A stretch of DNA of 64,000 bases. Source: Haliotis rubra. Its lineage: Eukaryota. Within the stretch, counting starts at the first letter, position 1; every line of letters begins with the position of its first letter. Position numbers and translations under genes: made by a program. Below, piece by piece: positions 2,512 to 60,683 of this stretch. A model generated the notes under the pieces. That model saw only the letters and a program-made list of their open reading frames with translations, was not told the origin of the DNA and searched no databases. The stretch is taken from assembly GCF_003918875.1 (NCBI RefSeq), contig NW_025766270.1, positions 868,001 to 932,000 of the forward strand, read 5' to 3'.

Positions 2512-4751
2512 ATGTCAGCAATGGCGGGTCTCCTGTGTCTAATGCTATGGTTCGGGGTGTGTGCTGCGGCTGATCTCACAAAGCTGGAATGGTCTGACTG
2601 CGGTATGTGTACTTCCTAATTGTCATGACAAAATGTCCTGTGTTAATGAATTAGCAGATGTTTGTTCCCAGCGAAATTAACCTTGAAACTGAGCAACGTG
2701 GCTTATCTGGTTGTGTTTTCTTGAGATCTTGAAGGACACCACTAGCAGGAGTGACGTTTGGTTCTAACATGTTTAGCTAGAAACTAGTTTCAGAGCATTC
2801 GGACATATACTCTCCCAAAAAAGAAACGCATCTGGGAATTTCAACTGTATTTTTATGTTTATTTTGAAACATCTTGTAGGCTTTATGAGTCAATGAAATA
2901 TAGCGAAATTGCACACTGGGAATGCAGACTTAACCGTCTTTGGCACCAACTCGAGGAAAGTCAGTTTGAGTGTCACATGGAGACGTGTGGTGGCGCTGAA
3001 ATCAATACCTCGTGTGACCACCGTGGGCATCCAGAACTGCACGGCATCGCCTCGGCATCGAACGAATAAGACTCAGAATCTCGCGTTGCCCAATCGCAGC
3101 CCACTCTGCCTGTAGTGCCTGTGCGAGTTGCTGAAGTGTCTGGGGCTGAGGGTTACGGCGTCGCACCCGTCTGTCCAGGGCATCCCACAGATGTTCGATC
3201 GGGTTTAAGTCCGGTGATCTTGAGGGCCAGGGGAGCACATTGATGTTGTGGTTCTGGAGGAAGTCTCTAGTGTGACGTGCTGTGTGGGGCCTGGCATTGT
3301 CCTGTTGAAACAACTCCCTCTGGCGATCAATGATTGGAAGGAGGTGTGGGCGTAGGATTTCGTCACAGTACCGTTGAGCTGTCAGGTTTCCCTGTATCAT
3401 CACCAAATCACTTCTCCTACGGCAGGTGATCTCTCCCCACATCATAACACTTACCCGGCCGACTCTGTCCACCTGGGGAACGCAAGCGTCGACGAAACGT
3501 TCACGTCGACGTCTGTACACCCGCATTCTTCCATCGCGTCGTTCCAATAGAAATCGTGATTCATCACTGAACCAGATTCTACGCCAATTCGGTAGGTTCC
3601 AGGCCTGAACGTTGGTGCACCATTGAACTCGATGTCGACGATGTTGTTGTAGAAGCACAGGGCCAAAATAAGGTCTTCTGGCACGTAAACCAGCCTCTCT
3701 CAACCTATTCCTGACGGTCTGTGCAGAAAGCCTCCTCAATCCGGGTATTTGTCGAGCGGTACTGGTCGCCGTAGCTGTTCGATGACGCAGGTGATGTACC
3801 CGGATGTAGCGATCCTGCGCCGCAGTGGTCGCTCGAGGTTCGCCCACTACGAGGGGGCATCTGCTACCGCATTCTGCCGGCGATATCTCTCCCAGAGCCG
3901 TGAAATGGTGCTTTGGTGAACATTCATGCGTCGGGCAACTGCACGTTGAGACTGGCCAGCCTCAAACAAACCAATGGCGATATGACGGTTGGCTTCACTT
4001 AGACGTGGCATTGTGCGTTCGTCAACAATATTCCAAATACAGTGAATAATCGACAGACAGCGATCAACCTTTTATACACATCATTGAGACTATCTGATCC
4101 CAAACTTTCACGTGCATTGCATGTAAATTGTGTATTCTGTGACACTACACGCCGAAATTGAAAATCATGCTGTTAAATACGGGTATTTTACGGATGGTGC
4201 GTTTTGTTGTGATGTTTCAAAACATAAACACCATAGGACTCATAAACAGAACAAAACATTTTGTAAAATGAATCACGTTTTAATTCATTGCTACATGAAA
4301 TTGCTATTTTCATGATGCGTTTCTTTTTTGGGAGAGTATATTATCACATTCCAACAGAACGAAATGTTTGTTGCTAAAATTATTTTTCATTGCTTACCTT
4401 GGTCTTTTTTTTCCTTCTATTTTTCTTACTTTTTTTCATGATTCTCCAAAAACATTCTTTACATGTTTAGTATACAAATTATACAATTACCTTTAATACC
4501 TATTTTTACATAAGGTGACTGTACGGCCAGTCTTCACCATAGTAACTGTGTTGTTACTAATGTGTACTGATATGGCTGTAAGTCTTCCATACAGTAACTA
4601 TATCCCAGTATTCTCAAGTATGACATGCATTAAACACAAAGATTTGGCAATCCATCTTACTTTATCATCAACATGAATGTTTAACATATTCTGCATATTT
4701 GGGCCATGTTTGAACCACATCTCTGGAGTGTGATGGCTTGTATGTGGGAAA

Positions 4752-5624: not shown

Positions 5625-8600
5625 GTAAAGATCCGGGTTGCAATTGGTCGTCTGCAACCCATGCTTGTCGTAAGAGACGACTAACGGGATCGGGTGGTCA
5701 GAATCTCTGCCTTGGTCGACACATGTCATCGTATGTCAATTGTTCAGATTGATGTATCATGCTGCTGATCACTGAATTGTCTGGTCCATCACTGAATTGT
5801 CGATTATTTTCAGACCGCCGCGATATAGCTGGAATATTGCTGAGTGCGGCGTAAAACTAAACTCACTCACTCACTTGCTAAATACGTAATTAGTAATACC
5901 TCGGTTCTGTAGCTCACTCGTGTATTCGGTCAACAGTGAAAAGTACCACCCAGTAATACATCAAAAATTTCAGTCAGGAGAGCTTAAAACTGAAAATTGC
6001 AGCCTTACTAGCCACATAAAGAAACTGTGCATTGTCAAAATATTATCCCAGTTGATAAGTACGATAACAATGTCAAAGGTACATATAAACTTGAGACCAT
6101 AACAAGTCGGGAGAATTTCAATTGAAAAGTCAATCACAATGACGTCACGAGTCCACAAGCGGGACAGGGGTCAAACGACCATGTCACAAGCTCAATAAAT
6201 GGTATGTCCACCATCGGCATTGAGAACAGCAGTGCATCGACGACGCATAGAGCCTATCAAACGTGCAAGGAAGGCTTGTGGGATGTCACGCCAGGTCCTC
6301 TCAAGTTCTGTTGCAAGGTCAAGGACGTTATCTGGCGGATGAGGAAGACGGCGTAGACGTCTATCCATCTCGTCCCAAACATGCTTTATCGGGGAGAGAT
6401 CCGGTGAATTTGCAGGCCAAGGCAGTAAGTCAACGTTGTGGTGTTGCAAGAAATCCATAGCAACCCTTGCCGTATGAGGGCGGGCATTGTCCTGTTGGAA
6501 TGTTAACCCAGGGCCATGACGTTGCAGAAAAGGAATTGCCACAGGTCGAAAAATCTGACCCCTGTAGCCCACACCAGTTAAGTTGCCCTGAACAATCACC
6601 AAAGGAGTTCTTTGGCGTGCTGTTATTACACCCCAAATCATCACGGAACCACCACCAAAGCGATTCCTCTCCAAGACACAAGCCTGTGCATAACGTTCTC
6701 CCACGCGTCTATAGGCGTTGACGTCCATCACTATGGGAAATGTTAAACCTGGACTCATCTGTAAAAACAACATTTCTCCACCAAAACAAGGGTCTGCGGA
6801 CATGATTTCGGCACCACATTCGGTGAGCTTGTCGATGAAGTTGTGTCAGGATAGGCCGTATGGCGGGACGTCGTGGTCTGATCCCGTGATGACGTAAACG
6901 TTGTCGAACTGTGTTGGGGTGGATACGGCGAAGTCCTTGGATGGTTCGGGCAGTCATCACTGCAGTCTGAAACCTGTGGCGAAGATGGGTCACCCTTATC
7001 CATCTGTCCTGTCTTGGCGTTGTTACACGTGGACGTCCAGAACGTGGCCGATCGATGACGTCATTTGTGTTCTGGTAGCGTCTCACCAGTGAAGAAATGG
7101 TGTTCCGGTGGCAGTGGAAATGTGCAGTCACTTGTCGTTGAGACATTCCCCCACGGACCATCCCAATGGCCTCATGACGTTGTGCAGACGTGAGCCTTGG
7201 CATGCTATGCGTTTTAATAGCCGTTTAATTTTTTGAACGATCGCAAGGGCAGTGGTTGAGCTTTCCAAAGTGACAGTATTGTGTGGCATTCATTTGCTGT
7301 TTCTCTTTCCCGGAATGCACGTGCAACGACGTATTGCACGTCTTAAGGACGAACCCACTGACGTCACGGAAGGTGACACGTGCATGTATGCTGGATACAT
7401 GTCACTAATCTCTGAGTTTAAATCCTTATGTGTCTACACAGGTTTGATAAATTTAGATTTTAAATGTTTGTTTGCACAGTTTCTTTATGTGCCTAGTATA
7501 TTTACTCCAAACGCTAATCCAGTGACTTTTTCTAAAAAGGAAAAAAAAGTTGAAAAGAAATGACGAAATTCCATTATAAACCATACCCTTCAATGTTCCT
7601 TCCTCCAACCAGCACCTACGACGACACATGCACGCTCCTGGCGACGATGCAGAAGGAGAACTGGGCCGGCATCATGGGCGACGTCGGGCGTCAGATCCAA
7701 CAGATGTTGGCCTCGGTGGGGATCACGACGTATTGTCCTGCTGTAGTGCAAAACATCGTCCTCCAGGACTACGTGCTGAAGATGCCGGCCGTTCCCTCAG
7801 TGTTGTCGTGGTTTGCCGAGGTGAGTGTCACCTCCGTGTTGTCACATCCGTGGTGAGTGTCACCTCTTTGTTGTCTTGGTTTGCCGAGGTGAGCTGAGTG
7901 TCCCCTCCGTGTTGTCGTGGTTTGCCGAGGTGAGCTGAGTGTCCCCTCCGTGTTGTCGTGGTTTGCCGAGGTGAGCTGAGTGTCACCTCCGTGTTGTCTT
8001 GGTTTGCCGAGGTGAGCTGAGTGTCACCTCCGTGTTGTCATGGTTTGCCGAGGTGAGCTGAGTGTCACCTCCGTGTTGTCTTGGTTTGCCGAGGTGAGCT
8101 AAGTGTCCCCTCCGTGTTGTCGTGGTTTGCCGATGTGAGCTGAGTGTCCCATCCGTGTATCACACTTTATCTTACCTTCATGTAAAATACTTTAATTTCA
8201 TTGGTCAATGACGGTTTAACAAGTTTCTGTGTCACCCTCCCACGAGGGTGACAACTGGAAAAAATATTACCTCCCAGGAGGGTGACAACTGGAAAAAATA
8301 TTACCCGCTGCCACGGCAACCGCCAAGCTCTCCGCCGAGAAGCTGAAGCGCTAACAATCGTATGACGTCATAATATGACGCATGCCGTGCCCGGAGTTCG
8401 AAAACCGTTCGATCAGGTGTTTTTGTGTTTACTTTGTACAGATTTATTTTACCGACTTTAACTGCTTTATTTAAGCTATTTTATACATTGAGTGGTTTGC
8501 ACACTCAACTTAAACATAATTAACCATTTCTATAGCAGTTTTATGTTTGTCAGAATATGTTTCACTGATGTTAAAAATCCAGTCGAGAGGCAGACGCCAT

Positions 8601-14958: not shown

Positions 14959-16030
14959 CAGGGTGGATTAAACGCATCATACAGCAAAAGGCAGATTCTA
15001 AATATAATCAGTGAACACAAACGAATAGTGATTGTTTTGTTGTGACTCATTTCTTTTCCATATATATATTCATTATATTCCGCTCAGTAGTAAGCCATGT
15101 CATGTTTAGAACTTCTAGATGGGCATTCAGTGAACACAAACGAAAAGTGATTGTTTTGTTTCGGGGTACCTCTTTATGATTCTAGTGCTATAGAAGTAAT
15201 ATCTGCTTAGTAGCTAGGTACATATCTAGAACAGATCAGGCGCTCACGGACATGTGCTGAAAATTCAAATGTGTCTTCTGTCCCCAAGTTAGTAGACCGT
15301 ACGTGGTAATCCAGGCAATTCCCACCGAACCGAGGTATATTCGGTACAATACCCACCGAACCGAGGTATATTCGGTACAATACCCAGGTCTCTGGTTCTA
15401 AATATGTACGGCCTGTATTCGTAACGCCCACGTTATACCCGACCCCAAACAAGCCACGTCCGACATGACAGGAATACCGTATAAAACCTCGATAAGTCAC
15501 CCAAATAAAGTGCTATGCAAATGTGATCGGGAACAGCCTTGTGCGTTAAATTCGTAGTAAATGACCAAGTGTGTTAAACACGTATTTTACTTGACGGTGA
15601 TAGCACGTGAAAATGGATTTGTACATATATATTCACTGTTAACAATAACATGTTCACAATAAGCATTCGAACTGTTGAACTTAAAGATTATATATCCTTT
15701 GGTACAGAGCAGAAGTAGAAGTAATATTGCTGACTGCGGCGTAAAACAATATCCAGTCACGTACTTGCTATAATAGATACGCTTATGCAATGTCTGCCTC
15801 TAATTGGAATTGTACTAACATCAAGCAGATTGTAGAAAGAGAACGTCGTTAGTCCTGACCCTGTAACTCTAGAAACCCAACCTTGAGAACACTTCCGGCT
15901 GTAACTGTGATTGTAAACAAAGGGACATTACTCCGTAACCTTGATTATTTATCCGGAACTTTGTTAATCAGCACGATTCCATAAAACGGTAACGTTCGAA
16001 TGAACGAGGTAATCTGAAGGGAACTGTGAG

Positions 16031-19000
16031 CTAGGCGGGATGGTTTATGTACATATAGATACTTTTGCAGTTGCTAGGGTCGCCATAGGCAACAACCCAA
16101 GCAATGTCATATTGCTGATGAGGATTGGTCTGACAGACATCCAACCTGTTCCACCAGGCTCCCTTATGCCACTCGGCACACGGCTCGACTGAGTTGTTGC
16201 AGTGATCCTTGGCACAGAAGTGACTCCCATCCAGGGTTCTAGCTGGGTCCCCCAGGTTGAAGCGGTCTCCGAAAACGCTATCCCCGGTGAACCCCGACAC
16301 CGACAGCTGATACTCCGAGGCCTCGTCACCCACGGAGAAGGCGTCGTAAGACACTTGTCCGGGAGTGCTGTCAAACTTCTTCAAGGACATGAAGAGTTTA
16401 CAAGGTCGGACACTGGTCAGAGCATGCACCTTCTCCAGACCCAGCCACATGTAACAGTTGGAGTGGGTGAAACCAGACTTGTAGTCGGCCCAGGGAACGT
16501 CGAGGTACGTCACGGGCTCCGCCTCACAGCCACTGATGGTTTTGTCCCTGAACATGATCATAGTAGTGACGCCATGGCATTCTATGTCAAAGGATTGTGT
16601 GGAGTTGGTCGGCCAGACAGTGTAGGTGCCATTAGGGTTACCAATATACTGGGACACGTCACTACAGTCTGCAACAGGGAAATAGTATTGTTACAGTGTG
16701 GTCATTGGTGATGTTACGTGTGGGATACAGAATGTTGGACAGAAAATTACTCAGAATATCAGTTTTGTCTTGATGGAGTATTGAGGAATGAGGACCCCGT
16801 CATGATAGTTAAGAAATCAACATCCTTGTATGCTATTACGCTATGCCAAACGGCGCCTCGGAGTTGTCCACTCACAAAGGGATACTGACCAACCTTGAGA
16901 GGCTGAAACCCGGTCAATGCACAATGGTCACATTTTACTACACAGACACACGACGCATCATGAAATTTCAAATATGGATTTGATTTGAATGAACTTGAAA
17001 ATTTCAGTCAATCGGTGTGTAAAGCACATTAAATGGATTTTTTATCGATATTAATGCAAAATGACGGTGGAGACAGCAAGAATATACTTTACTTGTTCCC
17101 CATGTCGGGGACTGACCCCGGTCGACACATCAACCACTTGCCTAACCCAACACTCAACAGTGTTAGTGCACTAAGTAAGACTGGAGTACCTTTAATCCGT
17201 GTTTCACAGCGTGTTCCGGTAGTGGAGGGCAGACAGCTGCAGGCTGGACCGACTGACGTACCGCCATTTTCACAGGTCGCCACATCTGCTTCAGTCGTTG
17301 TCCCTATTGGAGATGTTGATTCTGTTGATGGTGTCATTTCTTCTGTTGTTGATGTCGTTATGGTGTCTGTTGATGATGATGTCTCCAAAGCTTCAGATGT
17401 GGGAAGAACATCAGATGATCCCTGCATGAGACAATACCTGGTAAAGATGGCACAGAACATTCCCCTCTATCTACTCTGATGTTCTTGCTGTTGTCGGAAT
17501 ATGCGCCTTTAACATTCCGTGAAACGTATGGTGGCTGCTTTATCGCTGTATCACTCTATCGCTTTCTCGCCTTTTTATATCGCTTTCTCGCTCTGTTGCT
17601 TTCTCGTGCTATTGCTTTCTCATGCAATGATATCGCTTTCTAGTCTCGTGCTGTCGCTTTCCCGTCTCGTGTTATCGCTTTCTCGTCTCGTGATATCGCT
17701 TTCTCACTTTCTCGCCTCCGAATTTTAAGGCAAGAAGCGATGGCCCTAATCAGCCACCATAGAAACTCTAGTAGTTGTTATTAAGGTATAACTCTAAAGT
17801 TGTCCACGAGGCAGTGTATGTGGTTAGTTCATAACCGTATTGTGTTCTTGCACAGTGACCCTCCTAGAATCATCTGTCGTATATATTGATTTGCGTTTGC
17901 ATATAATTACATTCCAGTCTACCTAAGTTACACTTTTCTTTTCTTAAAACATCATGTATGCTTAAAACACATTTGTCTCTTCCTCTATAATAACACTGGT
18001 ACTCACTATGATGGATCTATCCCCGTTGTCAGGACACTGACACAATGTGTGAAGCCCATTTCTGGTGTCCCCCGCCGTGATGTTGCTGGAATATTGCTAA
18101 AAGCGGCGTAAAACCAAACTCAGTCAGTCAGTCAGTCCTCTATAATAACACTGGTACTGACTATGATGGATCTATCCCCGTTGTCAGGACACTGACGTTA
18201 TGGGCATGCTACTTTCTGTTCCGTTTGGATAAAATCAACAGCTTATCCCGTCCAACAGATGTCAAATTTCAGTTAAATAGTAACTTTAACATTTTAGAGC
18301 CCTTTCAATCCTGCTACATGAAGAAATATATAAAGTTTGTATTTTACAAAACATCCACTCCCTACAATGACATTAATGATTATAAATGTTTGTATAAATT
18401 TTGCTTCATCAAGTGTATCATATTGAAAACATAAACAACCAGTGAACAAACAAGTCACCGAGTTTGATTACAACTAAATTTAGCGAGCGAGACCTTTCTA
18501 ACCAAGGCCTCCCAAGGATGACTAGCAATAGACCACAGATCCTGCGATAAAAATATAGGAGCGAGTGTTTGGGGCCTTTTCTAACCAAGGCCTCCCAAGG
18601 ATGACTAGCAATAGACCACAGATCCTGCGATAAAAATATAGGAGCGAGTTTTGGGGGCCTTTTCTAACCTAGGCCCTCCAAGGGTGACTAGCAATAGACC
18701 ACAGATCCTGCGATAAAAATATAGGAGCGAGTTTTGGGGGTCTTTTCTAACCTAGGCCCTCCAAGGGTGACTAGCAATAGACCACAGATCCTGCGATAAA
18801 AATATAGGAGCGAGTTTTGGGGGCCTTTTCTAACCTAGGCCCTCCAAGGGTGACTAGCAATAGACCACAGATCCTGCGATAAAAATATAGGAGCGAGTTT
18901 TGGGGGCCTTTTCTAACCTAGGCGCTCCAAGGGATGACTAGCAATAGACCACAGATCATGCGATAAAAATATAGGATCGAGTGTTGGGGGCCTTTTCAAA

Positions 19001-20409
19001 CCTAGGCGCTCCAAGGGATGACTAGCAATAGATTGCAAACCCTGCCACAAAAATATAGGAGCGAGTGTTGGGGGCCTTTTCTAACCTAGGCGCTCCAAGG
19101 GATGACTAGCAAATGATTGCAAACCCTGCCACAAAAATATAGGAGCGAGTGTTGGGGGCCTTTTCTAACCTAGGCGCTCCAAGGGATGACTAGCAATAGA
19201 TTGCAAACCCTGCCACAAAAATATAGGAGCGAGTGTTGGTGGCCTTTTCTAACCTAGGCGCTCCAAGGGATGACTAGCAATAGATTGCAAACCCTGCCAC
19301 AAAAATATAGGAGCGAGTGTTGGTGGCCTTTTCTAACCTAGGCGCTCCAAGGGATGACTAGCAATAGATTGCAAACCCTGCCACAAATATATAGGAGCGA
19401 GTGTTGGGGGCCTTTTCTAACCTAGGCCCTCCAAGGGATGACTAGCAATAGATTGCAAACCCTGCCACAAAAATATAGGAGCGAGTGTTGGTGGCCTTTT
19501 CTAACCCAGGTCCCCAAAGGTGACTAACAATAGACCCCAGATCCTGCGATAAAAATATAGGAGCGAGTGTTGGGGGCCTTTTCTAACCTAGGCGCTCCAA
19601 GGGATGACTAGCAATAGATTGCAAACCCTGCCACAAAAATATAGGAGCGAGTGTTGGTGGCCTTTTCTAACCCAGGTCCCCAAAGGTGACTAACAATAGA
19701 CCTTCAGATCCTGCGATAAAAATATAGGAGCGAGTATTGGGGGCCTTTTCTAACCTAGGCCCTCCAAGGGATGACTAGCAATAGAATGCAAACCCTGCCA
19801 CAAAAATATAGGAGCGAGTGTTGGGGGCCTTTTCTAACCCAGGTCCCCAAAGGTGACTAACAATAGACCCCAGATCCTGCCACAAAAATATAGGAGCGAG
19901 TGTTGGGGGCCTTTTCTAACCTAGGCCCTCCAAGGGATGACTAGCAATAGATTGCAAACCCTGCCACAAAAATATAGGAGGGAGTTTTGGGGGCCTTTTC
20001 TAACTCAGGTTCCCAAAAGGGATGACATTCAATAGTCCACAGATCCGTATTATCAGTTACTATGGTAACCATACCAATAGGTAAACCATCTCACCTGTGT
20101 CCCAGCAGCCTCCTCCACAAAATACTGACACGTGACGTTGGGGACGCTGCCTAGGTTAGATGTTGCAGTCATCAGGTAACAGACGTCGTCATCGGGGCAG
20201 TAGACCACGCCGATGCAGGTGTTGACGCCGACACACTTGGCAAAACATTTAGTACGGGACGATGCCACCACAGACTGGATGTGAGAGAAGTTGGTCGTTG
20301 TTACCGAGTCCAGCAGTCTGTATCTATACGGTACACAGTTCTTCTCGGGTACGGGGCCAGCTTGCACACCCACAAGGAACAACCCTCCCAACATGTACAA
20401 TTTAACCAT
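16031..20409 (-). CDS. secreted fibrinogen-related protein A: signal peptide-PAN/apple-Thr/Ser stalk-EGF-FBG; exons 20095-20409, 17190-17421, 16031-16668; 394 aa
   Basis: Spliced with GT-AG and phases 0,1. PAN pattern CFAKCVGVNTCIGVVYCPDDDVCYLM; EGF CENGGT...CSCLPSTTGTRCE; FBG motifs DCSDV, GTYTVWP, WADYKSGF, WLGLEKVHALT, YDAFSVGDEASEYQLSVSGF, GAWW. Confidence 0.88.
17528..17761. mobile_element. MITE with internal ~20-bp tandem repeats
   Basis: TIR TATGGTGGCTG / CAGCCACCATA; internal (TATCGCTTTCTCGTCTCGTG)n. Confidence 0.7.
18042..18135 (+). mobile_element. 5'-truncated SINE family 1 with a 61-bp flanking direct duplication
   Basis: SINE 3' half with (CAGT)n tail; 17981-18041 equals 18136-18196 with one mismatch. 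Confidence 0.88.
18483..20045. repeat. ~80-bp satellite (about 19-20 units) in FReD-A intron 1
   Basis: Unit ...AAAAATATAGGAGCGAGTGTTGGGGGCCTTTTCTAACCTAGG...GACTAGCAATAG. Confidence 0.95.
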
Positions 20410-21984
20410 TGTCAAACCAGCGACAAGTTTCCCACATGCACAACGCACAGAATGTGAGAGCAGATGGAGGTTGCATTAACTGTATCGGGAACGGATTTCT
20501 AAGACCTGCAAGTTTCAAGTGTTAGTTAAACAACAAGAAGCTTGTTGAATGTGCAAGTTTTGATCTTATACTTAAGACACACAAAAGACTTCGCTATAGG
20601 AAAAACGTATATTTCTAACTTATAGTGTAAATGTTTCCGTTTCATGTGGACTGTTTTGTTAACGGCGTTGTCCATAGCAACAGTGATGTGAACTGGGGTT
20701 GATAGGTATATATTTTTTAATGTATTTTGCAATCGTTTGTTTTTCTAAACATTCTAAAGTGTGAAGGAGCTTATCCTTCGAAACATGTCAGCAGACTTCC
20801 GCTTGTTTGAAAACATCCAATAAAGATCCTCGGGCTGCACCAGTATGAACCGGTATGTACCATATAGACACCACTTATGCTTCTTTAGTATTCACGTCTC
20901 TAAAATCTTTAGCCATTACCTTTTGTCATTCAAGAACACAATCATTCTTTAAACTACCTTTTATCAAGTCACAGAGGATCAAACATTGTTTGATACTACA
21001 ACAATAGTGAGCCGCTATATAGACCCCATTTAAATTGTTAAGAGTCCAGGGAAGCAACATCCGTGTTCCATGTGTGTTTACACCCTAGAACACTACATAT
21101 GCTACGTCACGGCCTACTAAAGTACCCCACACATACTGATGTCTTCCCTGGGGTACCCCTTCCCTATCTCCTCGTCAGACTTTGTTTATCAAACAAGGTG
21201 TTTAGTCGGCCGCATGTTCAAATCAGTCAACGAAGTGAACATTTACTGAAGAGAGATCCAATAGTTTCCCATTTGCCCGAGGGTGGTCAATATAAAGTTT
21301 TAAAGTCCATCCATACACGTGGATATTGCAGTGTGATGTTTGTCTTTAGAGTGTTCATGACAGTGAAGTGTTAACAGTGTCATGTAAATCTTGTTCGTAC
21401 GTTACATATATCAATATCCAAGTTTCTCGTCCATTCACCATGTTGGTGATAGGTTTTGAGGGTGGGGCATTAAAATGAGTTTAGGCGTTTAGTTTACTTA
21501 GCATTTACTCAGATGTGTTCTTCAGAAATATAGCAGTTGATCGTTGATCATTAATAAGTAATGCTTTAACCATTTATTAGGGTACGAATCTTAACTCTTA
21601 TCTTGATTAGGTTGTATTTTGTGATTAATGATTTAAGCTGTTTTCTAATCATTTGAGGTCTCTTTGGTAGATTTATGCAGGGTGATTCTAAATACCCATG
21701 TAGACCTGATGATTCCATGCCGGTATACATTACACGCAGATACACATGTAATTCCTTTTTGTGTAGAAAAGAGCTAGAAATGCCTTTCCATGTTCATAAT
21801 CTCTTATCTATTATATGCTCGGTCTATATCATGGGCATGTGCTTGTGTAACAATCAAATAGTGAGGACATCAGGTTGTGGTGAGCGTATCCTGTCACAAA
21901 CACATTCAAAGGCAAGACAACTGTTCACCTCAAACACGGGAATATATTTTAGACCAAAAAAGACCAGCCTCAAACCTGAACCAT

Positions 21985-22630
21985 TGTGTGCCGACCAGCA
22001 ATGTGTCTGATGGCTACTGAGCATGACGTGACCCCTATGTAGCAACTACCTCCTCCATCATGTTTGTGTGTCGACCAGCAAGGTGTCTGCTGGCTACTGA
22101 GCATAGCGTGACCCCTATGTAGCAACTACCTGCTCCATCATGTTTGTGTGTCGACCAGCAAGGTGTCTGATGGCTACTGAGCATGGCGTGACCCCTTATG
22201 TAGCAACTACCTGCTCCATCATGTTTGTGTGTCGACCAGCAAGGTGTCTGCTGGCTACTGAGCATGGCGTGACCCCTATGTAGCAACTACCTGCTCCATC
22301 ATGTTTGTGTGTCGACCAGCAAGGTGTCTGCTGGCTACTGAGAATGGCGTGACCCCTATGTTGCAACTACCTGCTCCATCATGTTTGTGTGTAGACCAGC
22401 AAGGTGTCTGATGGCTACTGTGAATGGCGTGACCCCTATGTAGCAACTACCTGCTCCATCATGTTTGTGTGTCGACCAGCAAGGTGTCTGCTGGCTACTG
22501 AGCATGGCGTGACCCCTTATGTAGCAACTACCTGCTCCATCATGTTTGTGTGTCGACCAGCAAGGTGTCTGCTGGCTACTGAGCATGGCGTGACCCCTAT
22601 GTAGCAACTACCTATTCCATCATGTTTGTG
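21985..22630. repeat. 80-bp minisatellite, about 8 units
   Basis: Unit GACCCCTATGTAGCAACTACCTGCTCCATCATGTTTGTGTGTCGACCAGCAAGGTGTCTGCTGGCTACTGAGCATGGCGT. Confidence 0.95.
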
Positions 22631-24410
22631 ATCAGCAGCCATCTCCATGCCGCCTAATCCCCATCACCTCACTGGTGTCTGTTTAAACAACTGATCGTAG
22701 ACAGATCTGTTAACGGCCCATGAATGATGACTGTATAACCAGACTGAACTTCTGTGATGATAATCTGAATCTACATGCTTGGTGATACATAGAATCCTAC
22801 CTGACGGCCGACCTTAACGTCACGTATTGCTTGTTACGCGTGTGCTACAATCTCACCGTGATGCCCACCTTGACACAGTTACAATTTCCTATCGTATTAG
22901 CACCGTGGCCATCTGGAGTTTGTCAACATCAGCATCACTATTAGGATTATTTATTCATCGAATGTGTCCCTATGAGCGGTGACCAAAGTCATTCAATCAC
23001 TCGTACAACTAGCTCCAGGGAGAAGGAACAACAACCGTATCAACATTTCTGAAACATTTATTCAGCAATATTCAAGCCATACATCAGGACAAAGTTAAAC
23101 ACGGACAGTATAGGTAAAACCTTGCACAGACAACAGACAGCTTTGCAGATTAAACGCATAATTTTACGAAATGTAGATTCTACACAAACACAAGCGAATA
23201 GGGATGTTTTGTTTTGGTGTTGCTCATTTTGCTTCTGATTTTACATAACAACATGTACTCGTTTCTTGAACGGATGGGGACATATGATACTCAGCTGAAC
23301 AGACAGCTTGAGGCCTAGGCAGGTCAGAATTAGAATTATTAGAGGGACACTCATACATTGGTGAAATTCAAACGGGTGGCGAGATCTGATGAAAACATCC
23401 TGGAAGGAAACCCAAGATTCGACCCAGATAATTGACCCTGGTTATTTGCAGCCTGATGTCTACACTCGTGAAAACACCCGACCTGCATCTATCTGGAATT
23501 ATATAAACACAAACTTTCCCTTCCCCTCATTACTTACTTATTTCAACTCTACACCCCCCGACATAACTGAGATACCAAACTGAAATACAATTTAAACCCC
23601 AACGTATTCACTCTAATATGGGCTTACTATGAAAATTTGATCTGGAAAAAGTTGCTGTTTCCAAAATATTCAATTTTATTAAAAGAATTTAAAAATGCTT
23701 GCAAAACATTCTTCTAGTTTACAATGGTAACACAGGAAAATGTATTTGTAGGGCAATACAAATGGTCAACACGAAGACAATAACCATTATAAGCATCACA
23801 GCTGCAAATTTCAATAATCATAAATCGCCGAGGTAACGAAAAACAAACACCAAGACACAGATGTGTCTGACTGCGGCGTAAAACAATATCCACTTAAGCG
23901 ATTACTGTTGATACATGAACTCTATAACGTCTTTCCAACCAGCTTCACAGAGCATGTGTATAAATAATCGTGAACTCGGGAGGGTTGCAGTGACCAGAAA
24001 TGCGTGACAACACAAATCAGAATCGGCCTTCAGTGCGGACTGAATCATCTGACAGCAGCGAATGGGTGATTTTGTGTAAGATTTTTGTGCTTCATCGATG
24101 TAAATACATAAATAATTATAACTGACCATATTTCTTAAAATTTACTGCTGTCTTTTTTTGACATGATGACTTAAGCTTAATGTACCACAGGTAATTTCAA
24201 GCGGTTGACATTTTGTGTGGAACCGCAGTTGGTCATTTTATACATGAAAAAGGAGCTGACTGAGGTGGTCATGTTATATATTTCTGTGCTTCTTTAAGGC
24301 CAGACTATGAACACATGTACATGTAATAGCTGTTGATAGCTTAGTAAAATTTTTAAACCAATAATGTTACCATATCAGTCAATGGGAAAATATATGGTTT
24401 TGTATAACTT

Positions 24411-24510
24411 CCTGACGTCTGCTGGGAACAGTGAGTCAGACGGGTTTATATACATGGAGAAACTTTTGCAATCTCCTTCAGTGGAATCGTCAGCAAGTAA
24501 TTTCACATCG
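24411..24510 (-). pseudogene. remnant of the 3' end of a further FReD paralog
   Basis: Reverse strand reads ...GDCKSFSMYINP followed by CTCACTGTTCCCAGCAGACGTCAG, matching the CKSIYMYINHPA / CKSIYMFIYPA ends and the 3' flanks of genes A and B. Confidence 0.6.
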
Positions 24511-24670
24511 TCCTAGGATTGTTTAACGTTCTTTTCAAACAGCTTCACACAACATGCTCCAATATATACATACATAGCCGTGACACAGAGAGAGAGAACC
24601 AGAATAGAGAGAATGTGGGAAGTGTTGCAGCTCTACACTACGCCCGCTGACATCTGGCGGGAACAACGAG

Positions 24671-27600
24671 TTAGGCAGGATATATGAACATATAAATACT
24701 TTTGCATTCGTGTGGGGAACCATCAACAAGAACCCATACAATATCACGTTGGTGGTGAGGATTCTGCTGACAGGCATCCAACCTGCTCCACCAGGCTCCA
24801 CGATGATACTCGGCACAAGGGTTGGATGAGTTGTTGCAGTGATCCTTGGCACAGAAGTGACTCCCATCCAGGGTTGTAGCTGGGTCCCCCAGCTTGAAGT
24901 AGTCTCCGATAACGCCATCCCCGGTGAACCCCGACACCGACAGCTGATACTCCGAGGCCTCGTCACCCACGGAGAAGGCGTCGTAAGACAGTTGTCCGGG
25001 AGTGTTGTCAAACTTCTTCAAGGACATGTAGAGCGCGTAGGGTCGGACACTGGTCAGAGCATGTATCTTCTCCAGACCCAGCCACATGTAACAGTTGGAG
25101 TGGTTGAAACCAGACTTGTAGTCGGCCCAGGGAACGTTGAGGTACGTCACGGGCGCCGCCTCACAGCCACTGATGGATTTGTCCCTGAACATGATCATAG
25201 TAGTGACTCCTTCACATTCCAAGTCAAACGGTTGTCCGGAGTTGGTCGGCCAGACAGTGTAGGTGCCATTAGGGTTACTAACGTACATGGACACGTCAGT
25301 ACAGTCTGCAACAGGGAAATAGTATTGTTACAGTGCGGTCATTAGTGATGTTACGTGTGGGATACAGAATGTGTAACAGAAAAGTACTCAGAATATCAGT
25401 TTTGTATTGATGGAGTATTGAGGACCTGTCAAAAGCTGTCCTGAAGCTGTCAAACGGTTGTGCGGAGATGGTAGACCAGACAGTGTAGGTGCCACTAGGG
25501 TTACCAATATACTGGGACACGTCTGTACAGTCTGCAACAGTACTGTTACAGTGCGGTCATTTGTAATGGATAACGTTAGGTGGGGGATACAGAATGTTGG
25601 ACAGAAATACAAATTGAAATACCAGTATCATCAGTATCGAATGACCATGATGGATAATGCCCTGGTCTTCCCACTTTGTCTTCAAGTCACTACTGATGTT
25701 CGTTATAAGGAGTCAACCTGGAGGTTGATGACGTATGCATTGACATGTTTTGTTTTTCAGAAGACATACACGTAAGAACCGTTGTGTTCTCTGATAAATG
25801 TACTCGTAGTTAGGCCATCAAATACCGTGAAAACATTTGCCATTTACTTATTTAAGTATGACGATAGCAAGATTTGGTAGCAAGGAACACCCCAAATTAA
25901 ATGCAGTATATGTTGTAAAGTGCGACATTCAGCAGTATCTCCCTACTATGACGTCAGAAAGAAATAGGCTTGACCCATTGTATCCATGTCGGGATTCGAA
26001 TCCGGTTTGCCAAGAACACTTAACGCGTAGTAACAACCTGCTGCCTTTGAAGTCAAGGACGGTATACATAAAAAAGGATTACCTTCGATCCGGGTCTCAC
26101 AGAGTGTCCCTGTAAACGAGGGGGGGCAACTGCAACCGGCGACCATGCTGAGTGGTGCAACACCATTTGCACATGAGTTCGAAATTCCCGCCTGTGAATA
26201 TATATTTATCATCTAAAACTGTGTTCCACAGGAGATATCGCTTGTGTGAGATCAAACGATATCTCCTAGGAGATATCTAGAATATGTCGTAAATATATCG
26301 TGAATATATATTTATCATCTAAAACTGTGTTCCACAGGAGATATCGCTTGTGTGAGATCAAACGATACTAGGAGATATCGTTTTGACAGTAGATTTTGTA
26401 CAATGCTCTGACAATGCTATGACGTCATGAACTTGATGCTATGACATCGCTGCACTGCAAGTCTAATGGTAGTAGTGTTTGAGAGATGTACATTTTTCAT
26501 TGAAAACTACATAAAGAATGATTTTTGATGATAAATAGAATCTCGTTCTCTGGTCCACTGATTATATCTACAATTATATCAACACTCGTTGATAAAGGTA
26601 AAAATATCCTCGGCAAGCCTCAGATATTTGTAATTTTATCAACTCGTGTTGATATAATTGATATCAGTAGACACTTGGGTGAGATTCTCCACTTCCCCAA
26701 TTGGATCAATAAGAGGATCTTCTTTCAGATTTTAACAACCAACCTATCGTTGCTGCATAATATTTCTATTCATTAACGATTTGATCGCCTTTTTTAATCC
26801 ACAAGGGGATGGTTCGGTAGCCTAATGGTTAAAATGTTGGCTCCTCAAGCCGAAGACCCGGGTTCGATTCTCAAGACGGGTAAAAATTTGTAAAGCCCAT
26901 TTATGGTGTCCCCCACCGTGACATTGCTTAAAAACGGCGTAAAATCGCACTCAATCGCTTTCGCAACCTACGTATTTCCTGTGATGTTGCTAAATGTGTC
27001 AAGAGGGTACTGACTGGGATAAACGGAACAACTGATGATCCAAAAGGCCAGAAGTCGATGAGATACGGAAGAGTTGTAACTGTTTTCATTTTTCTCCGGG
27101 AGATCGAATTCAGCGAAAGGAAGTAATAGTACATGACAGGTTAGAATGAGTGGTCGGTTTCACGCCACGTTTAACGACACTCCAGAATCATCATGGTGGG
27201 GACCATCAGAAATGGTCTTCATACATTGTGCCCATGTGTGGAATCGAACCTGGGTTTACGGTGTGACGAGCGAACGCTCTAAAAACAGGGCTACACGATG
27301 ACCTGTAGGTGAATGACAGAAATGTGACAGTTGTGTATAATTCGTAAGAGACTCTCACCACACATGCAGATCAGTGGATGATGGTATGAGTGAGTGTTAA
27401 ATAAAGGCCGGGGTGCAAACCTAAAAAAACCCATGGGTTTCCAATGAGTCTCCCATTGGCTACCCCTCAGCAGTGTAGATGTTATCTACCCATGAGTGAC
27501 AGGACTGTAAGGGCTATGGGTGCCTGGTAAGAGTCTGGCGATGTCAAAGGTTAACCTTGGAATTTACTAAAAGAATAAACATGTGCCTTATAGTAAATGT

Positions 27601-28451
27601 CCGACAACCCTTTCACAACATATGTTGATGACTAAAGAGATTAATTTGATTAGCATATATGAAATTTCAAAGTTTACTTATTTTCTGAAAATAAAACCTT
27701 CAACACAATGGTGATGTCAGTATCAAACAAATGTACAGCCCTAATCCTGCACAGCATGGGGCCATGGGAGTGGGGAGGATGTCATTTTCACAACCTCCCT
27801 GAAATATGAAACCCTGAATGAAACTTTTAGACAACTCACAGGCTTGTTTCCCCTGGGAAACTCAAATCTGGATTTGAAAATGAGAAATATCTTTTCAAAA
27901 TGTGATTTGTAGGCTGTCTGCATACATACATTTTACAGTGAGTCTTCATAACATACTTCTTTACACTATGGCTTAATTTCATCATGAACCGGTAAGTCAA
28001 TTTTGTGATATCTACTTGAATACTGCATCGCTTTCCATCGAAAGACAGCTTCCACAAGGCAAGGAGGCCACACCCCATATGTGTATAGGTTTGAACCCTG
28101 GCCTTTAAAGCTACTGACCTGTGTCCCAGCATCCACCTTCGCATACGCCCGACACGTGTCGTTGGGGACGCTGTCAGGTGTCGCAGTCATCAGGTAACAG
28201 ACGTCGTCGTCACGGCAGTAGACTACCCCGGTGCAGGGGTTGACGCCGACACACTGGGCAAGGCATTCAGTAACGGAAGTGGTAGTCACAGACCGGATGC
28301 TCTCGGGGATGCTCTCGGGGAGGGCGTTTGTGGTCGGGGTGTGAAGTTTGTAGAGGGAGGACCTGGTGGCAGCAGCAGCTTCTACGCTGGCAGAAAGAAG
28401 GAACACCATCAACAGCGTGGAGAACACCATCATATTCAGGCAGCTTACCAT
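24671..28451 (-). CDS. secreted fibrinogen-related protein B: signal peptide-PAN/apple-EGF-FBG; exons 28119-28451, 26083-26191, 24671-25305; about 358 aa
   Basis: Paralog of gene A with the same intron phases; PAN CLAQCVGVNPCTGVVYCRDDDVCYLM; EGF CANG...CSCPPSFTGTLCE; FBG ORF 24671-25294. The start may be a downstream ATG (about 28433). Confidence 0.85.
25447..25610 (-). pseudogene. partial duplicate of the FBG exon 5' end plus acceptor region, inside gene B intron 2
   Basis: TGTTGCAG|ACTGTACAGACGTGTCCCAGTATATTGG = DCTDVSQYIGNPSGTYTVW, truncated after QPFD. Confidence 0.8.
26805..26955 (+). mobile_element. SINE family 1 (diverged)
   Basis: A/B boxes and body homology. Confidence 0.8.
27146..27302 (-). 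mobile_element. SINE family 1 (diverged)
   Basis: Reverse-complement homology including GGAATCGAACC. Confidence 0.75.
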
Positions 28452-30275: not shown

Positions 30276-30875
30276 CAGTATCTGATGTAACCGCTTCGCA
30301 CTTGCATAACATTTTCTACACGCCGTCTCATGCCGTCTGATTCTCTGTTGGAGGATCTGCTGCCACTCATCATGCAATACATGGGTCAATTCCTGAAGGG
30401 TCTGAACTGCTCTCACCCTGCGTCCCAAAATGTCCTACAATGCTCAATAGGATTCATGTCTGGACTTCTGACTGGCCACGGTAGTGTCTCAATGGCGTTG
30501 TGTTGGAGATGCTGAACAACAGCTCGAGCACGATTTGGTCTGGCATTATCGTCCATGAAGACTGAACGTGTGACGAGAGCATGGTTATCGAAATGAGGCA
30601 CAACAGCACCGTCCAGGATCAAGTTCTGGTACCTCTGTCCATTCAATGTCCCGTGAACTGTGATGAGGTCAGTTTTACAGTCATAGGAACAACACTCCCA
30701 CACCATGACAGATCCACCCCCTAATGAAACATCAGCTTGAAAGTTCCTCTGATCATATGCAGTCCCTCTCTGCCTCCAAAGTCGTGCCCTCCCATCTGTA
30801 TGATGCAGCAGAAATCTGCTTTCATCGGACCAGTAGATCTTTCTCCATGTCCTCAGTTTCCAGCGAGCACGTATA
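30276..30875 (-). pseudogene. degenerate Tc1 transposase (catalytic half)
   Basis: YWSDESRF, FMDDNARP, SPDMNPIEH; frameshifted C-terminus; 5' part cut by a MITE. Confidence 0.85.
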
Positions 30876-31443
30876 CAGTCGAACACCGTTGTCTCGATAT
30901 TCATGGGACCAAGAAAAATATCGAGTTATCCTGAACTTCGAGACATCCGACCAGGGCATATCATCACATATCACTATGAAGGGCATAAACATATCAAAAA
31001 ACGCTTCTCAGTATGTTTTGATTCGAAACTATAATCCGTTATCAGTAGTGTTTAGTCGTAACAGTGAGTACTTCCTAATTAAATCCTTCTTAATTAATCC
31101 TAATTAAATAACAAACAAGTGACACCTTCAACTCAATTAGCCCTAATTAGTTTACACTACCGCATCCCTTTGATTCATGCCGCACCGTGTAAACGTGTGG
31201 AAACAACCTCAGTTCAGAGGGATACTTGCCCATGAAAGGTAGGTGAATATCGAGTTTCTTTGCAAATATCGAGTTAAAAGGGTAATTTTGCTTGTTTGGA
31301 CCATGAAATTATATCGAGATATCCGAAATATCGAGACATCCGTATCGAGTTAAAAGAGCTTGAATAATGATAAATTATGAAGGATTTTGCCGGGACCGAG
31401 ATGTTAAATCGAGACAATCGAGATATCGAGTTATCAGAGTTCG
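30876..31443. mobile_element. pogo/Tigger-like MITE running into a gap
   Basis: TA|CAGTCGAACACCGTTGTCTCGATAT start; ATATCGAGTTATCAGAGTTCG at the right end; many ATATCGAG motifs. Confidence 0.65.
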
Positions 31444-44800: not shown

Positions 44801-47800
44801 GAATGTGTATAAGTATCTGCCATTGGTGTAATTCTTTATTTGATCTATTGTGTAGTCTCTGGCGCTCCTGGAGACTGACCTGGCTGTCAGACATGAGGTG
44901 CTGGAAGTCCTGCAGCGCTTCTCCAAAAACTCAGGTCAGTTGCAGTCATCAACTTCCACATCAACACCACTAGTCCCTTTCACAACCACATATTTACCTT
45001 CCACCCAGAACAGAACATTCCGTTTTGGATATAGTTTCTGGGTTAGTTTCTGGGTCCAGGGCAAAAGAAGCTGAACAATTCTTACAGTCATGATAAGTTC
45101 CAGAAATCCAGATCTCCAGTTTACAGGTACACATGATGTTTAGTCCTACATTAAACAATAAACTGAAAGGACATTATAAGTTATTCACTGGTCACGAGGG
45201 GAACAAGGGTTGATGTACCCTCAATGTTTCAAGGGTACATCAAGGGTACATCAACCCATGGGCCCCGAGGGACCAGTGAACAACATATTTATCTTACCGA
45301 ACACCTTAATGTTAATTTTGAATTGTTTGAAGCACGGGTACAAAACTTTTTGTAGCCATCACTAGATTTTGCAGACGACAAAAAAAAAACGATTTAGAGT
45401 TATCTCCCCTCCATCGATTTGCATTTGCAAAACATTGGTAATTTCTGTACATCATACGTTATTTAATGTTATTCGAGATAAAGAATTACTACCACGAAGT
45501 ACCAAATGAGTTCGGCATTTCCGGCGGGGTACTTAGAAAATGTTACTCGCTTGTAAGCGGGGTAAATTGAAAGTAATAGAAGAGCGCTCAGCCAATCAGA
45601 CAACAACATTTATGTGTGAGGTAAGATAAAAATAATTGTTGTGATGTTTTACATTTACCAGGTAACTGGTATGGACACACTTAGTTTCACAAAGGCACAG
45701 GTAAATTATCTGTCTGGTGCCTAATGGCGCTCATCGAAAAAAAATATGCATTTCTATCCCTGATGAGTATGAGTGATCTTGTTACAGCCAAGAACTGCGA
45801 CCAGATGTTGAGAGCAGATGGCGCCCGGCGGGTGTGTTCTCGACTCATGGATGCAGATCCGTCCGGACAGACTCTGTTCCGATCTGTAGACATTTTGTGG
45901 AATTTGCTGGAGCATGGAGACAATGCCATGATAGCTGAACAGCTCAACAACCTGGCCTGTATCAGGTGGGAATAAAGTCGTATCAAATAACAGATATTGC
46001 ATGGTTTAGGTGACAGGAAACTAGACTAATATCATGTCTTTTTCTGGTCCGTTTTGGGCGATGGGGTAGCCCAGTGGTTAAAGCTTTCGCTCATCACGCC
46101 AAAGGCCCAGGTTCGATTGCCCACATGGGTACAATGTGTGAAGCCCAATTCTGGTGTCCCCGGCCTTAATATTACTAAAACTCAACTCACTCACTCTGGT
46201 CCATTTTGGATTAGTTATAGCCTTCCTTCATGTTGCTGGAAAACTGATGAATGGGGCATTGAGTGAACCACATACAAAACAGACAGAACTCAAAACTTGT
46301 TTTTAGGGGCAAATCCATGTATAGACATGTTATACAGTATATCTCGTGTGACGGCCTGTAAAATTAATACTAGGAAAGTTTTACAAGATTGATCCGTGCA
46401 GCCTGTCATTGAAAACAAGATTAAAACTACGCGTGATATTGCTGGAATATTGCTGGAATATTGCAGACCATGGCATAAAACAAAAAACAAAACAAGATAA
46501 TATATTGAAAATGGAGATCAGCAGTAACTTTTTATGTTTTGTCATCTGCACACCAATGTCCTGGTAAACATGTTAGATGCGGGCCACCTTACTGATGCCA
46601 ACGATCTGTCGCAATGTGGTAACACAGCAACAGTAAACCATGACTCAGTCCTCTGTCTTATTGTGATGCTTCATTCTCTCTATCATCTCTGACCATCCTT
46701 TGTACAGCCAGCTGCAGGATGCCTTCATCTTTGAGCTGACCCAGGGGTACAGTCACTACGACCGCCAGCTCCGCAACGATCTCCTCATCATCGCAACTTT
46801 GGTTGCCTCACATTGTCCTGAGGCTCCATTTGTAGAGACAGGCTTCAGCAAACAGCTCACTTTGTTTGCCACCTTCCAGGAAGGTAGGTCTGGTACCAAC
46901 CAACATTCATAGTGTGATATCCCACGGTGATATACCACAAACCACAGCATGAAACAATAGATGTCTTTCAGTGGCATTTAGAAGTTGTGCATAGATGTCC
47001 AAGATATTTTTATGGATTAAACTTCTTTTTTATTCCCCTCACGACGTTTCGGGACCAAAAAAAAAGAAGTTTAATCCATAAAAATATCTTGGACATGAAA
47101 CAATAGGTTCTGAATCAGTGTTGTGATTTGTAAAGAGTTTTGATAATTAGGTAATAATTTAAACCAGAAGAGCATGGATGTAACTTCTGACACAATATCT
47201 ACACACTATTTTTAGATTCATCTACAAATGAGTTTTTCAGATTTGTTGATCAACAGGAGGTAGTACATGAAGTATAGTTTAATGAAGAGACTATACCTGA
47301 ATTATGTTAGATAGTTTGTGAGTTTGAGATAAGGTAGATTTATTTTGGCAGTAGTCAAGAGACATGCTTTGAATTTTCTGTTGGACTAAAGTACACAGCT
47401 AGTGGAAAATAATTTTCTTTTATGATTCATCCATGATTTATGTAATGTGACTACTACAAGAACACACACACTGAAACACACACACTGAAACACACACACT
47501 GACACACACACTGACACACACACTGAAACACACACACTGAAACACACACACTGAAACACAAGCACACTGAAACACACACACAAACACACACTGAAACACA
47601 CACACACTGAAACACAAGCACACTGAAACACGCACACTGAAACACACACACACTGAAACACACACACTGAAACACAAGCACACTGAAACACACACACTGA
47701 AACACACACACTGAAACACACACACTGACACACACTGAAACACACACACACTGAAACACAAGCACACTGAAACACACACACTGAAACACACACACTGAAA

Positions 47801-59260: not shown

Positions 59261-60683
59261 TGTTTGGTAGGCTTTATGAAATGTGACAAAATAATTCACA
59301 ACCATTCATTAGGACTTGAAAAAGTTTCATTAATATGTATTAGTTTCATTTTCATTGAAAACATCCAATTAGTATAATTGTTTGAACCATTTTACAGTAA
59401 CACCAAAAAGTAACAAACACAATAGATGACATTCTTATTGAAACGTGGATGAAGCTACCTGCATACTTGTATCATTTCCAGCCCAGCTGCATGGAATGTG
59501 CTTCACCTAACCCTACACATACATGTACATATTGGGGGTTTCTCTTTTTCAACAACCAAATTTGGGGTGATAGCATTTTTGGGTCCCAAGGGCTAAGTAA
59601 TGGCAGCAACATTCATTGAAGATAACGTCTTGAAGGCTCACAGGTTTACAGGCTTGTAAATTCATTGATGGAATATGCATGGTTCTATTTTATTCAACGC
59701 TTATGTATATGTTTGATTTGTTGATTCAGCACTTGTGTAGGAAGTAATCCTCCAAGAATGATACTATCTGTGGCTAGCTTCCAAGTATCAGCAGTGATCT
59801 TCAGCACTTAAACGATAAGTAACCCAGAAACAGACTGGTTAATAATATATATGTACAATTTCAACAATTAAACATTTTCTTAATAAAATGAGATAAAATT
59901 ACAGGTGGAATTCTTATAAAATGACATTTACCTATCTGAAACTTGATCTGTATATTACAAAGTCAAGGTGCAAGATTGCATGGTGTGTTTCTAATTTTAT
60001 CCCACTTGATTATATTGTATTTAACTAATACATGCTGTGTAGGTTAAAAAGTAGGCAAATGTCATCTCTTATCGGTATACATGTAGACCATGTTTCTGTT
60101 TATCACTGAGGATTAAACATACTTTGAAGTCTTAATGAAATCAAACTGCAATATGCTAAACAGCACATTCAACATAGAGTGTTGACACAACGTGATCTTG
60201 CACACTTAATAAACCATTTTTCTGGGCAGTGAATCCATCATACCCCACTGAATCTTGACCTCAGACTTACAAGAGTGTTATGACTGCTTTGTGCACATGG
60301 GAGAAGGTCTGAGATAAGTGAGTGTAAAATTGGCTCCTTTATATACTGTCTGCACTGTGCTGCTATTCATAGTGACCTTTTCATGGAAAGGGATGTTTCA
60401 TCTGTGAGATGCATGTAACATTTGAGTTCACGTGATTAACTAAGGTCATCATGTACTTGGAATCAGAATCATAACACTACAGTGAGCTTGTGGGTTTCAT
60501 CACCTTTTGAATTTACCAGATACCAGAATTTACCTCCAGATTTTCCCGCTGATGATAATGCTAGGCTGATAATGTGCCAACAAGCTAAGGCAACGTGTAA
60601 CACTTGCTATGATACAGCACATATTAGGAATGGACTTACAGGGGGTTCTCAAGCTAACAAGGTGGTTCATGGATACATATGTA

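Follow-up and report, generated by a model that had tools for sequence, protein, structure and literature searches.

Two tandem units in Haliotis rubra, probable members of an abalone family of secreted PAN, EGF-like and fibrinogen-like proteins

Results

Two head-to-tail units with one module per exon

The window analysed here is a stretch of 64,000 nt from the blacklip abalone Haliotis rubra (GCF_003918875.1, NW_025766270.1:868,001-932,000), and coordinates below are window positions unless another contig is named. It holds two units, A (16031-20409) and B (24671-28451), which are arranged head to tail along the minus strand and have three exons each. It is probable that they are tandem members of a family of small secreted proteins expanded in Haliotis, in which a signal peptide and a PAN (apple) domain are followed by an EGF-like module without its first disulfide and by an atypical fibrinogen-like (FBG) domain. 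The exons are as follows.

20409-20095, minus strand: gene A exon 1, with the ATG, a hydrophobic signal and a PAN/apple domain (7 Cys); donor CAG/GTGAGA, phase 0
17421-17190, minus strand: gene A exon 2, with a 49-residue stalk followed by an EGF-like module of 4 Cys; entered in phase 0 and left in phase 1
16668-16031, minus strand: gene A exon 3, starting (D)CSDV, with the whole FBG domain and the stop codon; Fibrinogen_C 77.6-82.6 bits
28451-28119, minus strand: gene B exon 1, with the ATG, a putative signal peptide and a PAN domain (6 Cys); a further in-frame ATG lies at 28475
26191-26083, minus strand: gene B exon 2, with the EGF-like module only, alignable to those of the family, and no stalk; canonical AG/GT sites and phases
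25305-24671, minus strand: gene B exon 3, with the FBG domain and the stop codon, open; Fibrinogen_C 84.8 bits

All introns of both genes are GT-AG with compatible phases, as checked with a local script. Exon 1 of gene A is identical to residues 1-105 of RefSeq XP_046569279.1 (Haliotis rubra "angiopoietin-2-like isoform X2"), and the joined translation of 394 aa equals this protein at every residue. Gene B has an open frame of 358 aa with the same phases as gene A. It was searched exon by exon, and exons were joined only in the script, for the frame check and for the identity of A with the RefSeq protein. In RefSeq isoform X1 (XP_046569278.1, 408 aa), exon 1 of B, read from the ATG at 28475, is joined to exons 2 and 3 of A. 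Exact-protein look-ups of XP_046569279.1 and XP_046569278.1 in public assemblies gave no match.

In both A and B the N-terminus is hydrophobic, as read by eye, and neither protein has a later hydrophobic stretch. RefSeq models of gene A and of paralogues splice exon 1 to the FBG exon, as an earlier note on this DNA, made from the letters alone, had presumed. The predicted products are putative secreted proteins of PAN, EGF-like and FBG modules, one per exon. This module-per-exon plan had also been proposed in the earlier note. It applies to both genes for the signal and PAN, the EGF and the FBG exons, but the stalk is present only in A.

Within gene B intron 2 lies one further feature.

25449-25540, minus strand: partial duplicate of an FBG exon, with its first 27 codons, about 70 nt of intron and its own intact acceptor

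Identity between the copy and the gene A orthologue of H. asinina is 91% (tblastn, blastn), and a frame that reads through the copy meets a stop codon where the real exon 3 of gene B begins. No canonical poly(A) signal was found within 800 nt past the stop codon of either gene. Since the signals are missing for both, they are uninformative on B.

Most of gene A intron 1 is filled by an 84/166-bp tandem repeat (18495-20004, 18 copies of the 84-bp unit). The orthologue in H. asinina carries this repeat in the corresponding intron too (L026, 10246-10901).

The PAN and EGF-like modules

The PAN domain is detected by Pfam, by profile search and by fold search, in agreement with the earlier reading of the sequence. 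The window genes score 23.4-29.6 bits for PAN_1 (PF00024), above the curated cut-off of 21.4 bits, with 25.8 for gene A and 29.6, the highest value in the family, for gene B. Paralogues on other contigs reach only 15-19 bits. A profile built from eight PAN domains of the family was run against 1.84 billion representatives and retrieved 66 proteins. Of the matches from outside Haliotis, eight were scanned with Pfam, and all eight proved to be PAN_1 proteins, most with several repeats. The AlphaFold model of the gene A domain has the order beta-beta-alpha-beta-beta-beta (predicted local distance difference test score, pLDDT, 63), and nearly all of its top 50 Foldseek matches in the PDB are PAN domains, with TM scores of 0.5-0.64. 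They include plasminogen, HGF, the Sarcocystis lectin SML-2, an Eimeria PAN module, AMA1 and factor XI.

Outside Haliotis, the relatives retrieved by the profile search were PAN-repeat proteins, none of them with an FBG domain, so that the PAN-FBG fusion may or may not share descent with those of other molluscs or cnidarians. Six PAN cysteines are invariant across the family. The PAN domain of gene B lacks the N-terminal cysteine that is present in A and in the other PAN types.

The stalk that precedes the EGF-like module in gene A is mucin-like, with 51% Ser/Thr among its 49 residues. The module itself reads C-x-N-G-G...C-x-C...T-G-x-x-C-E. Pfam EGF families reach only 13-17 bits, under their cut-offs, and a family profile of the module matches the EGF repeats of Notch1 (E 3e-10) and EGF1 of factor VII (E 1.7e-6). 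Four of the six EGF cysteines are present, with C1 and C3 missing. Since the C3 position holds a non-Cys residue and a C1 is missing upstream, the module would have lost its C1-C3 disulfide and kept C2-C4 and C5-C6. Exon 2 thus appears to encode a cut-down EGF domain.

An atypical FBG domain

For Fibrinogen_C (PF00147), where the curated cut-off is 22 bits, A and B score 77.6-84.8 bits, which makes both of them FReDs. In comparisons with the PDB, the family FBG profile matches angiopoietin-1 (E 3.5e-18) and FIBCD1 (E 9.2e-18), exon 3 of gene B matches FIBCD1 (E 3.9e-17), and FIBCD1, angiopoietin-1 and tachylectin 5A (TL5A) together match the abalone domain at E 1e-15 to 1e-18. The cysteines predicted to form the two canonical FBG disulfides (DC...C and C...GxWW...C) line up with their counterparts in FIBCD1 and angiopoietin-1, and none of them varies among 13 copies.

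The domain departs from ordinary FBGs in several ways. An extra Cys pair (SGC...SNC-YMW; HSNCYMWLG) is invariant in all 13 copies compared, and the C-terminus falls short of that of the nearest ordinary FBGs by about 10 residues, the loop with the pocket Tyr-Ala among them. Both traits (the pair as ISGC...NCYMW) had been pointed out from the sequence before, and they stand. A second extra Cys pair (F-C-AKDH-C) is located on the calcium loop. Here, FCAKDHCNNS aligns to TKDRDSDHSENN with the second Asp, a calcium-binding residue, deleted, and two new cysteines flank the loop. After the second canonical Cys, the abalone domain has Gln where acetyl-binding lectins have His, and GVTTMIMFRDKTISGCEAEPVTY stands where other FBGs have the GGGWTV block.

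The closest FBGs from outside Haliotis, which are at most 35% identical, retain CDMETDGGGWTV, GFG..EGEHWLG, FSTPDRDND and the longer C-terminus. The GGGWTV and FSTPDRDND motifs of the nearest ordinary FBGs are absent from the abalone subtype. Its altered features are invariant in the 13 copies and are present also in a 52%-identical H. cracherodii fragment. The subtype is so far known only from Haliotis.

The roles of the calcium-loop and acetyl-pocket residues in FIBCD1 and TL5A are established by published structures. In the alignments, the abalone FBG has neither the D-x-D calcium loop nor the His/Tyr/Tyr-Ala acetyl pocket. With replacements or deletions at one calcium-binding Asp and in the pocket, calcium-dependent acetyl binding is probably absent.

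A family in tandem arrays

The earlier note had described two paralogs. The family is larger than that, with about 20 units in the H. rubra genome, in tandem arrays on two other contigs. Contigs C2233 and C2526 carry 17 full-length open copies of the FBG exon and many fragments, at 75-85% identity, together with about 23 copies of a second PAN exon type. Within 150 kb of C2233 there are at least 14 units in the order PAN, EGF, FBG, several of them broken. The spacing of three FBG copies at 909-925 kb of C2233 (minus strand, 5.5 and 8.6 kb) is mirrored at 520-535 kb of C2526 (plus strand, 5.7 and 8.3 kb). One of the contigs may therefore be a haplotig or an inverted duplicate, and the count of about 20 may be inflated.

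RefSeq models of array units in H. rubra and H. asinina have the same joined PAN-EGF-FBG order. Their stored annotation lists PF00147 alone, and names given in the family are "angiopoietin-2-like", "ryncolin-1-like" and "slit homolog 1-like". The PAN domain of the family has thus been missed by database annotation.

H. asinina holds the orthologue of gene A at the syntenic place, with collinearity that includes an ML-domain neighbour. The H. asinina sequence compared ends where the orthologue of B would start. On a contig from another sequencing run, presumably of another abalone, a B-like PAN exon has EGF and FBG exons of its own less than 1.5 kb further on. Upstream of the gene A orthologue, H. 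asinina has an inserted reverse-transcriptase gene (RVT_1, 831 aa; L026, 3822-6409), and the sequence around the insertion is otherwise collinear with the B-to-A spacer of the window.

Diverged PAN exons and a homogenised FBG core

Genes A and B have diverged very unevenly along their length. Identity is 52% in the PAN exon, with a synonymous divergence (dS) of 0.48, and exon 2 has a 44-residue indel and a dS of 2.4. The first 175 codons of the FBG domain are 84% identical with a dS of 0.09, and the last 35 are 63% identical with a dS of 0.64. The statement of the earlier note that the paralogs differ most at the C-terminus therefore holds inside the FBG exon (63% versus 84%), but the PAN exon and the stalk indel differ more. 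The only long stretch of DNA that aligns well between the two genes spans 776 nt and is sharply bounded around exon 3.

16012-16787, minus strand: likely gene-conversion tract, 88% identical to 24652-25424 (blastn), with exon 3 and about 120 nt of the preceding intron

The pattern extends to the whole family. In every pair, dS of FBG codons 1-175 is between 0.09 and 0.30, and dS of the PAN exon ranges from 0.05 to more than 2 (saturated). In pairs with near-identical PAN exons (dS 0.05-0.13), it is the FBG dS that is higher. The PAN exons fall into at least three diverged types. A and B differ at 52 codons, and at 13 of these both states are found among the array copies. The four-gamete test is failed by 51% of the informative site pairs, and none of 2000 permutations reaches the observed value in the pairwise homoplasy index (PHI) test. 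The simplest reading of these sequences is that the FBG core would be homogenised by repeated gene conversion or by exon-level exchange, with the PAN exon and the FBG tail left to diverge. The family would then be a clean case of mosaic evolution at the level of exons, in which the PAN exon varies and the FBG exon is homogenised.

The family had also been called diversifying, and the substitution rates do not bear this out. The ratio of nonsynonymous to synonymous rates (omega) in the FBG domain is 0.2-0.6 across the family and close to 1 only for A versus B, where changes are few and the value is not significant. Nonsynonymous and synonymous changes number 18 and 1 on the A branch and 12 and 3 on the B branch, for a neutral expectation of about 3.7 to 1. 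The excess of replacements on the A branch is not significant (one-sided binomial probability about 0.07). Positive selection was rejected as a claim, the branch counts being suggestive for A, not significant, and confounded by gene conversion.

Surrounding sequence

Other features of the window are listed here.

21984-22630: 80-bp minisatellite between B and A, 8 copies that are 95% alike, the source of look-alike short ORFs (open reading frames)
3002-3847, 6192-7203 and 30413-30904, all minus strand: Tc1/mariner-type transposase remnants (DDE_3, HTH_Tnp_Tc3_2) that flank both genes
52806-53315, plus strand: exon similar to cilia- and flagella-associated protein 69, in the C-terminal region of ARM repeats (PF21049, 135 bits)
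47461-48738: 1.3-kb (ACACACACACTGAA)n array
57203-59264: 60-bp satellite, about 34 copies

The strong spikes of GC- and AT-skew in the window are due to the (ACACACACACTGAA)n array and the 60-bp satellite.

Discussion

The architecture and what is specific to abalone

The combination of PAN and FBG domains had been regarded in the earlier note as unusual among FReDs. It is neither unusual nor new, since it is already present in PMC7588048 and in clusters of the ESM Atlas. Lu et al. 2020 (PMC7588048) confirmed a PAN/Apple domain in the Biomphalaria glabrata FREP gene Bg179/FREP1, for which Adema et al. 2017 are also credited. PAN/Apple domains are known in some Lottia gigantea FReDs as well, according to a statement in PMC7588048 that cites Gorbushin et al. 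2010. Among the 30 nearest named clusters of the ESM Atlas, 11, from Mollusca and Cnidaria, carry both Fibrinogen_C and PAN_1, and one cnidarian cluster combines PAN, EGF and FBG. The architecture is thus widespread. As to whether it is already characterised, no functional characterisation was found. Gene A is annotated already, and the architecture claim is of little weight. The Haliotis-specific traits are the changes in the FBG subtype and the mosaic manner in which the family evolves.

Weighing the explanations

Several points speak against the view that A and B are two working genes for secreted recognition proteins. RefSeq splices the PAN exon of B onto exons 2 and 3 of A. Exons 2 and 3 of B are absent from every database protein, and the best match to the FBG exon is only 82% identical. 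The model of the PAN domain is only middling (pLDDT 63), with Foldseek E-values of only about 0.01. The analogy to known FReD lectins is weaker for the missing canonical residues of the calcium site and the acetyl pocket, and no publication on these proteins was found by their accessions or by abalone FReD terms. Because RefSeq X1 uses exons 2 and 3 of A, and those of B occur in no database protein, B is only a candidate for an independent gene. There could instead be a single gene, with the two PAN exons as alternative first exons to the EGF and FBG exons of A, and with exons 2 and 3 of B as skipped relics. Isoforms X1 and X2 have precisely this form, X2 joining exon 1 of A to the same two exons, and no database protein contains the FBG exon of B. 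The decoy acceptor and the partial copy of the FBG exon just upstream of B exon 3, and an omega of about 1 or more on the B branch, point the same way. However, exons 2 and 3 of B are open, with canonical sites and the right phases, all other units of the family are self-contained PAN-EGF-FBG triplets, and the contig of the other sequencing run has a B-like PAN exon with EGF and FBG exons of its own. Omega is equally high on the A branch (18 nonsynonymous changes to 1 synonymous), and therefore fails to single out B, and computed gene models can merge tandem duplicates. We consider the single gene somewhat unlikely. Much of the same evidence bears on the idea that B is a young pseudogene, open by chance, and that only gene A works. 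The lack of a database protein, the decoy acceptor, the loss of the N-terminal PAN cysteine that is kept in A and the other types, and the omega of about 1 against A all speak for this. Yet the PAN exon of B is used in a RefSeq model and has the top Pfam score of the family (29.6 bits), the three exons are open across 358 codons, and synonymous variants common to B and array copies speak for ongoing exchange and not for decay. This makes a pseudogene improbable. Finally, divergent PAN first exons that all end in phase 0 might be joined in a mix-and-match manner, at this locus and perhaps in the large arrays as well, with EGF and FBG exons from the same unit or from a neighbour, the FBG core being kept constant by conversion. 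Splicing to the neighbour is suggested by the form of isoform X1, and we regard the scheme as a whole as very unlikely. If true, it would provide many different PAN heads on one common FBG body, by a variable-first-exon logic that has not been described for FReD proteins.

The other question concerns the role of the proteins, for which the earlier note had named immunity, mucus, shell or gamete recognition as candidates. They may not be lectins at all, and may be structural or adhesive parts of matrix, mucus or the egg or sperm coat, which bind proteins via PAN and FBG. The calcium site and the acetyl pocket of the FReD lectins are not conserved, and PAN domains bind proteins as well as sugars, with factor XI, plasminogen and HGF among the fold matches. 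Gene A has a mucin-like stalk, and in the profile search of the PDB the top matches are angiopoietins, whose receptor is a protein. Against this, big tandem arrays with pseudogenes and gene conversion typify recognition families, no repeat, transmembrane or polymerising domain is present, and there is no link to any tissue. A structural or adhesive role is thus possible, but on balance unlikely. Under the preferred reading of A and B as tandem members of a secreted, Haliotis-expanded family, the proteins would act extracellularly as soluble two-headed binders, in lectin-like, FReD-type recognition of patterns or glycans. Each copy may owe its specificity to two variable parts, the PAN head and the C-terminal tail of the FBG domain. 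Since the cysteine count is odd, with 21 in A and 19 in B, disulfide-linked pairs would be allowed. To judge from the residues at the pocket, ligand binding is probably unlike the calcium-dependent binding of acetyl groups by ficolins, FIBCD1 and tachylectin 5A. An FBG subtype without the calcium and acetyl-pocket hallmarks, and with two gained Cys pairs, means that it would be wrong to predict ligands by analogy with ficolins. The family may be of interest to workers on abalone immunity and on disease in aquaculture.

Comparison with known systems

A and B differ from the best-known FReD classes in what precedes the FBG domain. FREPs in the strict sense combine IgSF and FBG domains, and no Ig family was found in Pfam scans of the exons or of the gene A protein. 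For ficolins, the gene A sequence and its Pfam scans contained no collagen match and no Gly-X-Y run. Angiopoietins, after which RefSeq names gene A, come first among the PDB matches of the FBG profile. The abalone proteins are only about 30% identical to them and lack a coiled-coil or superclustering region, so that the name reflects similarity only. With FIBCD1, the ficolins and tachylectin 5A, the abalone proteins share the FBG fold and the cysteines of both canonical disulfides. In contrast to these, they have no collagen or coiled-coil stalk, and lack GGGWTV, one Asp, the His and the Tyr-Ala loop.

The FReMs, which consist of EGF-like and FBG modules and are known from Littorina and Biomphalaria, are a standard category in PMC7588048. 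They resemble the abalone proteins in having the EGF-like part directly before FBG, without collagen or coiled coil. The abalone proteins differ in their single EGF-like module, with four cysteines instead of six, and in the upstream PAN domain. The ESM Atlas clusters with Fibrinogen_C and PAN_1 share the same Pfam families, have similar lengths (325-398 aa), and show feature scores of 0.87-0.94 to the gene A protein, in a comparison by cluster summary alone that leaves domain order and homology unconfirmed. Gastropod FReDs with PAN are similar in that an N-terminal PAN/apple domain is carried by a secreted protein that ends in FBG. In Bg179, PAN and FBG are separated by IgSF and a coiled-coil interceding region, whereas in the abalone proteins a single cut-down EGF module takes this place.

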